A stretch of 64,000 bases of DNA, from the NCBI RefSeq assembly GCF_009834535.1, contig NC_045699.1, positions 68,572,001-68,636,000 on the forward strand, written 5' to 3'. This document shows positions 14,011-15,699 of this stretch, piece by piece (the first letter of the stretch is position 1; each line of letters opens with the position of its first letter). Under the pieces are notes generated by a model. It was not told the DNA's origin, did not search any database, and was given only the letters and a program-made list of their open reading frames with translations. The DNA comes from Camelus ferus. Taxonomy: Eukaryota. Made by a program: the position numbers and the translations under genes.

Positions 14011-14016
14011 AATAAA
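14011..14016 (+). promoter_or_regulatory. SWI5 polyadenylation signal AATAAA
   Basis: Canonical hexamer 85 nt after the SWI5 stop codon. Confidence 0.75.
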
Positions 14017-14026
14017 CATGAGTGAT

Positions 14027-15601
14027 TACTTCTCCCCCGGACTCCTTAGTAGACTGTCAATGGGAGATCCTCGTGACCACCCCCTCGCCTCCTCCAGCCC
14101 CACAGACCCCTACAAGTCTCNNNNNNNNNNNNNNNNNNNNNNNNNNNNNNNNNNNNNNNNNNNNNNNNNNNNNNNNNNNNNNNNNNNNNNNNNNNNNNNN
14201 NNNNNNNNNNNNNNNNNNNNNNNNNNNNNNNNNNNNNNNNNNNNNNNNNNNNNNNNNNNNNNNNNNNNNNNNNNNNNNNNNNNNNNNNNNNNNNNNNNNN
14301 NAAGCATGTGCCCAGGGCAGTGTTCATAGACCTGGAACCCACAGTCATTGATGAAGTTCGCACTGGCACCTACTGCCAGCTCTTCCACCCTGAGCAGCTC
14401 ATCACAGGCAAAGAAGATGCTGCCAATAACTATGTCCACGGTCACTACACCATAGGCAAGGAGATCATTGACCTCATCTTGGACCGAATTCGGAAACTGG
14501 CCAACCAGTGCACAGGTCTTCAGGGCTTCTTGGTTTTCCACAGCTTCAGTGGGGGAACTGGTTCTGGGTTCACCTCCCTGCTGATGGAACGTCTCTCTGT
14601 CGATTATGGCAAGAAATCCAAGCTGGAGTTCTCCATTTACCCAGCCCCCCAGGTTTCCACAGCTGTAGTTGAGCCCCACAACTCCGTCCTTACCACTCAC
14701 ACCACCCTGGAGTACTCTGATTGTGCCTTCATGGTAGACAACGAGGCCATCTATGACATCTGTCATAGAACCTCAGTATTGAGTGCCCAACCTACACTAA
14801 TCTTAACTGCCTTATTAGCCAGATTGTGTCCTTCATCACTGCTTCCCTGAGGTTTGATGGAGCCCTGAATGTCGATCTGACAGAATTCCAAGCCAACCTG
14901 GNNNNNNNNNNNNNNNNNNNNNNNNNNNNNNNNNNNNNNNNNNNNNNNNNNNNNNNNNNNNNNNNNNNNNNNNNNNNNNNNNNNNNNNNNNNNNNNNNNN
15001 NNNNNNNNNNNNNNNNNNNNNNNNNNNNNNNNNTGAAATGTGACCCTTGCCATGGTAAATACATGGCTTGCTGCCTTTTGTACTGTGGTGATGGGGTACC
15101 CAAAGATGTCAATGCTGCCATTGCCACCATCAAGACCAAGCATACCATCCAGTTTGTGGACTGGTGCCCCACTGGCTTCAAAGTTGGCATTAATTACCAG
15201 CCTCCCACGGTGGTACCTGGTGGAGACCTGGCCAAAGTACAGCGAGCTCTGCATGCGGAGCAACACCACAGCCATGGCTGAGGCGTGGGCTCGCCTGGAC
15301 CACAAGTTTGACCACCAGTTTGGCCAAGTGTGCCTTTGTTCGCTGGTATGTGGGTGAGGGCATGGAGAAAGGAGAGTTTTCTGAGGCCCGTGAGGACATG
15401 GCTGCCCTTGAGAAGGATTATAAGGATGTTGGAGCGGATAGTGCTGAGGGAGAGGATGAGGGTGAAGAGTATTAACCTGTCTGCTGCAATTTTGCACTCT
15501 TACCTTGGGACTGTCTTATTTGTGTTTTGTGGAGCTACCCATTGTGGCCCTATCTTGTCAATAAAAGCCATGTTTCTATTTTCAATGTCAAAAAAAAAAA
15601 A
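14027..15601 (+). pseudogene. Full-length processed pseudogene of alpha-tubulin 1C (TUBA1C-like)
   Basis: Intronless KHVPRAVF...[21 protein letters not shown] (TAA 15473-15475); the tail is TUBA1C type. Both UTRs resemble TUBA1C as recalled. AATAAA 15560-15565, poly(A) 15590-15601, TSD ATGAGTGAT (14018-14026 and 15603-15611). Frameshifts near 14770, 15250 and 15315, with many CpG transitions. Two N gaps inside. Confidence 0.95.
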
Positions 15602-15699
15602 TATGAGTGATCTTGGTGTAAATCTGTACACTGATTCTCCTCTGATAGCCCCCTGATCCCATCCTGGAAAGAGAGCCCACCTTGGAAAACAGCAAGCTG

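Follow-up and report, generated by a model that had tools for sequence, protein, structure and literature searches.

Comparison of the camel SWI5 locus with those of other mammals shows that a single insertion has cut the sole canonical and conserved SWI5 poly(A) site in two, and that each of the halves has been paired with a new partner. The structural part of this reading, namely that a TUBA1C retrocopy was inserted in the sense orientation inside the SWI5 poly(A) site and is now a dead pseudogene, is almost certain. The best explanation as a whole, in which the retrocopy insertion has produced two composite poly(A) sites and the SWI5 transcript is processed at both of them, is moderately probable.

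The SWI5 gene and the insertion at its 3' end

The gene upstream of the retrocopy is identified as SWI5 by its Swi5 domain, its sequence identity and its synteny. The parts of SWI5 and of the retrocopy described below are on the plus strand of the window (the whole 64-kb stretch of Camelus ferus DNA that was analysed). The coding exon at 11504-11626 (RPSPKSGQ...SQLTSE) has an AG acceptor and a GT donor, and is identical to residues 116-156 of the Camelus ferus SWI5 protein P0267. The core of the Swi5 domain is encoded by the exon at 12320-12414, for which splice sites were also read and which matches Pfam PF07061 with an E-value of 2.4e-12 (47.2 bits, the cut-off being 22.1). The coding part of the last SWI5 exon (13861-13925) ends in ..AMIRGVTTKELYPEFGLDVND and the stop codon TGA at 13923-13925. 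It matches positions 63-79/80 of the Swi5 profile (E 0.0097), and its peptide is identical to the C-terminus of P0267. A protein database search with the window exon returned mammalian SWI5 proteins. SWI5 has GOLGA2 as its upstream neighbour, in head-to-head arrangement, in all of the fetched loci (dromedary, warthog, cattle, gray whale and donkey). The window and P0267 both read AMIRGV at a position where dromedary SWI5 has AVIRGV, which marks the window as Bactrian-type camel.

The native SWI5 3'UTR, including the poly(A) signal, extends from 13926 to 14016 and aligns with the 3'UTRs of warthog, cattle, whale and donkey. It contains a (TGTGTA)3 block at 13993-14010, equivalent to three UGUA motifs, followed immediately by the AATAAA at 14011-14016, which is aligned with the hexamers of the outgroups and is called site A, the proximal site, below. 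Apart from this AATAAA and the one at 15560, there is no canonical hexamer in the interval 13900-17000. In the first 900 nt past the stop codon, each of the four outgroups (warthog, cattle, gray whale and donkey) has just one AATAAA/ATTAAA. The camel SWI5 3'UTR is without approximately 165 nt (near 13950-13960) that are found in these four species, and its stop-to-hexamer distance is 86 nt, compared to 211-254 nt in the others.

The inserted sequence is flanked by a 13-nt target site duplication (TSD) with one mismatch. The left copy of the TSD, AAACATGAGTGAT, is located at 14014-14026 and includes the last three A of the SWI5 hexamer; the order at the left junction is the hexamer, the TSD and then TACTTCTCC... 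The right copy, AAATATGAGTGAT, is located at 15599-15611 and has one C-to-T difference from the left one. As the outgroups have a C at this sole mismatch, it is the right copy that has mutated. Directly 3' of the right copy is the flank CTTGGTGTAAATCTGT at 15612-15627. The insert is bounded by AAAcATGAGTGAT and AAAtATGAGTGAT, the sole two matches in the 64 kb. The pattern AAAYATGAGTGAT likewise occurs exactly twice in the 64-kb window, at both ends of the insert, with none expected from 100 shuffles. The first-pass annotation of this DNA had described a left TSD overlapping the SWI5 AATAAA, and all of the elements that it named are present at the positions it gave.

The 3' ends of SWI5 in warthog, cattle, gray whale and donkey were compared with the camel sequence from which 14027-15611 had been removed. 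Warthog, cattle and gray whale represent the empty site: their AATAAA is followed by an uninterrupted CATGAGTGAT or a near variant of it, and then by a GU-rich flank. The 13-mer is present as a single copy in these three species, and the block behind it, YTTGG...AAATCTGTAYGCTGATTCCCTCTCC, is conserved over approximately 45 nt. The alignment identifies the hexamer as the conserved poly(A) signal of SWI5, the 13-mer as ancestrally single-copy, and the tubulin sequence as an insertion. The native region downstream of the SWI5 signal (CTTGGTGTAAATCTGTACACTGATTCTCC...), conserved and contiguous with the hexamer in the three outgroups, has been displaced in camel to 15612-15660. The earlier reading that the right TSD is followed by the original downstream flank is thereby confirmed, as is the separation of the hexamer from its conserved downstream region by about 1.6 kb. 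The same alignment, together with the sequence reading, supports the related claim that the retrocopy's own AATAAA (15560) now stands ahead of the displaced SWI5 flank. Further downstream, at approximately 15750-15890, is a SINE core (..TTTATAGATGAGGAAACTGGGGCTCAGAGAGG..), which we take to be MIR-like; it is kept in warthog, cattle and whale, and serves as an orthology anchor for the downstream flank.

The LINE-1 endonuclease has the consensus TTTT/A on the primed strand, and in target-primed reverse transcription by LINE-1 a T-ended 3' hydroxyl primes on the poly(A) tail of the mRNA. The nick deduced from the TSD boundary, 5'-GTTT/ATT-3' on the bottom strand, would fit this consensus, with the boundary blurred by the A run and the right TSD differing at one base. 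The retrocopy would have been inserted by LINE-1-type target-primed reverse transcription, with the bottom strand nicked first, within the hexamer's complement. As AAA was duplicated within the 13-nt TSD, an intact AATAAA was rebuilt at the left junction. The inserted copy has no introns, a poly(A) stretch after the parent's signal, a TSD together with an empty site, and no remaining coding capacity, as is found for processed pseudogenes made by LINE-1. A duplication at the DNA level is ruled out by the absent introns, the A tail and the TSD.

Both junctions are present in the independent assembly of the dromedary. The empty-site check thus gave an empty site in warthog, cattle and gray whale and a filled one in dromedary, which places the insertion on the camelid branch, after its split from the other artiodactyls and before the split between the dromedary and the Bactrian-type camel. 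No SWI5 protein of the Lamini (alpaca, llama, vicuna) was found in protein searches, and neither the filled nor the empty junction was matched in one metagenome scan.

Poly(A) signals and the predicted processing of SWI5 mRNA

The core downstream signals of mammalian poly(A) sites are located within about 40 nt after the cleavage site and are usually essential (PMC2553571). GU/U-rich trinucleotides were counted in the interval +11 to +50 after the hexamer, which is a crude heuristic and not a trained poly(A)-site model. Warthog, cattle and whale score 5-7, and the empty camel site, when reconstructed, scores 6. The count is 2 at the present site A and 5 at the present distal site, called site B (7 when the interval is +21 to +60).

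Site A now consists of the native UGUA motifs and AATAAA followed by C-rich sequence of the tubulin 5'UTR, and still has GAGTGAT, a piece of the former GU-rich stretch that lies within the TSD. Site B combines the retrocopy's own AATAAA (15560-15565, 24 nt 5' of the A run) and a U-rich upstream region (42% U) with an A12 remnant of the mRNA poly(A) tail at 15590-15601, the last three A of which are common to the right TSD, and then with the native GU-rich region of SWI5. The remnant is A13 in dromedary. The old SWI5 block begins 10 nt past the A run, and its conserved GU-rich region is found 10-40 nt beyond A12. Retroposed sequence is present within -40 to +40 of both predicted poly(A) sites: the retrocopy starts 11 nt after hexamer A, and hexamer B with the following 24 nt is retrocopy sequence.

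The insertion would have weakened site A and not abolished it. Site A may still work, since its AATAAA and three UGUA motifs are in place, and judging from the sequence heuristics we favour at least partial read-through past it. Processing of the SWI5 transcript would then take place at both of the sites and yield a short mRNA that ends near 14030-14045 and a long one that ends near 15590-15600. Such tandem alternative polyadenylation would result in 3'UTRs of about 0.1 kb and 1.67 kb, the long one being almost entirely pseudogene, and is plausibly the likeliest outcome for camel SWI5. We lean slightly towards the long form making up a substantial part of the SWI5 mRNA. Whichever of the two poly(A) sites is used, the SWI5 protein stays the same.

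The insertion might also have had no effect at all, with site A still processing essentially all of the SWI5 transcripts and the pseudogene being untranscribed intergenic DNA. The hexamer and the three UGUA motifs are indeed intact, GAGTGATTACTTCT and AGACTGTCAATGGG supply some G/U content behind the hexamer, and SWI5 is a conserved repair factor, in which the insertion has been tolerated at least since before the two camel species split. However, the conserved 45-nt downstream block has been taken away from site A, the GU/U-rich count has fallen from 5-7 to 2, the new sequence is C-rich, and poly(A) sites usually cannot do without their core downstream signals at +1 to +40 (PMC2553571). An insertion without effect is possible in view of these observations, and we consider it rather doubtful.

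Transcript assemblies were searched for camel SWI5 open reading frames (ORFs) with full-length and C-terminal queries and through cluster members, and the Camelus proteins returned all came from genome annotation and none from a transcript contig; the SWI5 ORFs derived from Logan belong to other mammals. Exact look-ups of a 64-residue ORF starting at an internal Met (in its Bactrian-type and dromedary versions) and of an antisense ORF inside the last exon gave no match. An exact look-up of a junction-spanning ORF also gave no match; this ORF has a GTG start, and a mismatch at the first residue may explain the miss.

The retrocopy and its decay

The sequence reading and the profile and PDB matches show that 14027-15601 is an intronless, near-full-length alpha-tubulin retrocopy in the sense orientation relative to SWI5. 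The body of this TUBA1C-type processed pseudogene occupies 14027-15589. Its 5'UTR-derived part starts at 14027, and the predicted ATG at 14125 (under a masked run) comes after approximately 99 nt of 5'UTR-like sequence, suggesting that the retrocopy is near full length. The stop codon TAA is located at 15473-15475 and is followed by the 3'UTR-derived part at 15476-15589. In searches with the unmasked pieces, Pfam Tubulin was matched with an E-value of 9.5e-45 and Tubulin_C with 2.6e-21. The same pieces align with the PDB 'Tubulin alpha-1C chain' at residues 60-215, 216-259, 304-374 and 400-449. Residues 60-449 are thus colinear with cDNA spacing and zero introns. Vertebrate alpha-tubulin genes contain introns, and the parent gene would too.

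The last 50 residues have their best, end-to-end match in PDB Tubulin alpha-1C (449 residues, with an acidic C-terminal tail), and the alpha-1A and alpha-1B chains require a 2-residue gap in the C-terminal alignment. By the C-terminal tail and the 449-residue length, as compared with the PDB chains, the parent of the retrocopy is assigned to the TUBA1C paralogue type. The first-pass annotation had already proposed a sense TUBA1C-type retrocopy directly behind the SWI5 hexamer; the Pfam matches, the colinearity with PDB alpha-1C, the identity of SWI5 and the comparative loci all agree with this proposal.

The reading frame of the retrocopy is interrupted in several places. A 1-nt deletion near 14768 (within 14764-14772) causes a frameshift between tubulin residues 215 and 216, where the frame switches from the piece 14302-14775 to the piece 14769-14900. 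The frame that comes from the tubulin N-terminus reaches a stop at 14848. Two more frame changes are found within 15246-15330, one near 15250 and the other within a tandem duplication at 15298-15326, and three separate frames are needed to read residues 304-374, about 380-395 and 400-449. The duplication consists of 2.4 copies of the 12-nt unit GACCACAAGTTT, found in place of tubulin codons ~392-399, and looks like a templated mutation of the slippage type that caused one of the frame changes. The copy further differs from an almost invariant protein by approximately 25 amino-acid changes in 321 codons. Nine of these replace Arg by Cys or His, which is the signature of CpG decay. Having at least three frame changes and premature stops in the original frame, the retrocopy has lost its coding capacity and is a dead processed pseudogene.

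In the dromedary annotation (GCA_000803125.3), the pseudogene is listed as a protein-coding tubulin gene of 355 residues, at 8955-10111 of the dromedary locus L002, which corresponds to 14125-15281 of the window. The gene is assigned Tubulin and Tubulin_C domains, and the annotation would imply that the tubulin copy is a working retrogene. This is very improbable, because three frames are needed to read the copy and its N-terminal frame stops at 14848, because highly conserved residues have been replaced, many of them Arg by Cys or His, and because the copy lacks its own promoter and has kept just a remnant of the 5'UTR. A full-length functional tubulin is refuted by the frameshifts, and due to the same frameshifts the 355-residue gene call is likely a mis-annotation.

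Two masked runs lie within the pseudogene. The first one (181 N, 14121-14301) covers, by position, approximately 4 nt of the 5'UTR and codons 1-59. The second one (132 N, 14902-15033) covers codons 260-303, and its flanks (residues 216-259 and 304-374) share one reading frame. Codons 260-303 take up 135 nt, compared to the 132 nt expected from the cDNA, so that this interval is one codon longer. The window aligns with L002 in three blocks, 5174-14120, 14302-14901 and 15034-17925, at a constant offset of 5170, which indicates that both the 181-nt and the 132-nt runs have their true length and that their flanks are continuous. The dromedary annotation opens the tubulin coding region at the equivalent of 14125, which is the position of the ATG predicted from the frame of residue 60 (14302). 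Across the aligned region 5174-17925, where GOLGA2-SWI5 and the pseudogene are located, the window and dromedary are mismatched at only 36 positions in 12.4 kb (0.29%), and the 600-nt block 14302-14901 is free of mismatches. The window has a third N run outside the pseudogene locus, at 22718-22860 (143 nt). An assembly artefact, in which reads resembling tubulin mRNA or cDNA were wrongly joined into the 3' end of SWI5, might be suspected because of the N runs in the region and the abundance and mutual similarity of tubulin sequences; it is extremely improbable, as the independent dromedary assembly shares the junctions, the TSD and the lengths at one constant offset, the copy shows pseudogene-type decay, and the TSD with an empty site in the outgroups is what a real insertion leaves.

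The ~25 changes in 321 codons correspond to roughly 3% of the non-synonymous sites, or to about 2% when the CpG changes of Arg are left out. Together with the 0.29% difference between the window and dromedary, they would make the insertion roughly 10-60 million years old, according to which rate is assumed, an estimate too loose to be placed relative to the camel/llama split.

Comparison with known systems

By its structure, the camel retrocopy is no different from an ordinary processed pseudogene made by LINE-1: it is intronless, has a poly(A) tail and a 13-nt TSD with an A-rich start fitting a TTT/A nick, and has acquired frameshifts and CpG decay. Only its landing place is unusual.

An independent retroposon has landed just behind the same SWI5 AATAAA in donkey. 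At positions 10185-10452 of the donkey locus (L005) there is a SINE, which we take by its appearance to be ERE-like, with ATATGAGCAATCTT and ATATGAGCGATCTT on its two sides. Its start is 1 nt past the SWI5 AATAAA plus C, and, as in camel, the hexamer has been separated from the old downstream block, which was pushed away. Unlike the camel retrocopy, the donkey SINE is antisense, approximately 240 nt long, and has its own TSD, ATATGAGC[A/G]ATCTT. The hexamer is directly followed by the T-rich tail of the SINE, which could act as a U-rich downstream element in its own right.

There have thus been two independent retroposon insertions within about 25 nt behind the same AATAAA, one in camelids and the other in equids. 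It may be speculated that camel SWI5 mRNA ends mainly at the hybrid distal site, carrying the whole sense TUBA1C pseudogene with the TUBA1C 3'UTR, and that the camelid and equid hits might reflect TTTATT as a preferred LINE-1 target. This combined proposal is unlikely. If distal use did prevail, the transcript of a DNA-repair gene would be coupled to tubulin-directed post-transcriptional control, for instance through shared microRNA sites. If TTTATT, the complement of the hexamer, were a preferred target of the LINE-1 endonuclease, the 3' ends of genes would be remodelled recurrently.

In humans, about 8% of poly(A) sites have a transposable element associated with them, the majority of these sites being lineage-specific (Lee, Ji and Tian 2008, PMC2553571). 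Sites to which retroelement sequence contributes only the upstream or only the downstream half are a described and common class (PMC2553571). The camel sites resemble this class in that retroposed sequence forms the downstream half of site A and the upstream half, including the hexamer, of site B, and in that the event is lineage-specific and has reshaped the 3' end of a gene. They differ from it in their donor, which is a processed pseudogene of a cellular mRNA and not a LINE, SINE or LTR element, and in that one insertion, by severing a conserved site that was already there, made at once both half-native sites, the use of which is predicted (PMC2553571).

Chimeras between host genes and retrocopies are another related system. 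A retrocopy is found in the 3'UTR of TTC7B, and a chimera with VRK2 is terminated at the poly(A) signal that EIF3FP3 brings along (PMC5010893). The camel case, as predicted, would likewise consist of a promoterless sense retrocopy that is transcribed from a host promoter and provides its own poly(A) signal. The TTC7B and VRK2 cases are backed by transcripts, and that of camel SWI5 is predicted from the genome; the TTC7B and VRK2 insertions are not located between the host hexamer and its downstream element, and the camel one is (PMC5010893).

If the long SWI5 isoform exists, the camel locus would be a natural experiment on the contribution of each half of a poly(A) site in vivo, and a clear example of a promoterless pseudogene that is expressed purely through its position. 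Otherwise, the retrocopy is one more lineage-specific processed pseudogene. The protein-coding tubulin call in dromedary merits correction, and the annotations of camelid SWI5 3'UTRs merit checking. While the event itself is of an ordinary kind, its distinctive trait among the systems compared here is that a single insertion has halved a conserved sole poly(A) site and has re-paired both of the halves.
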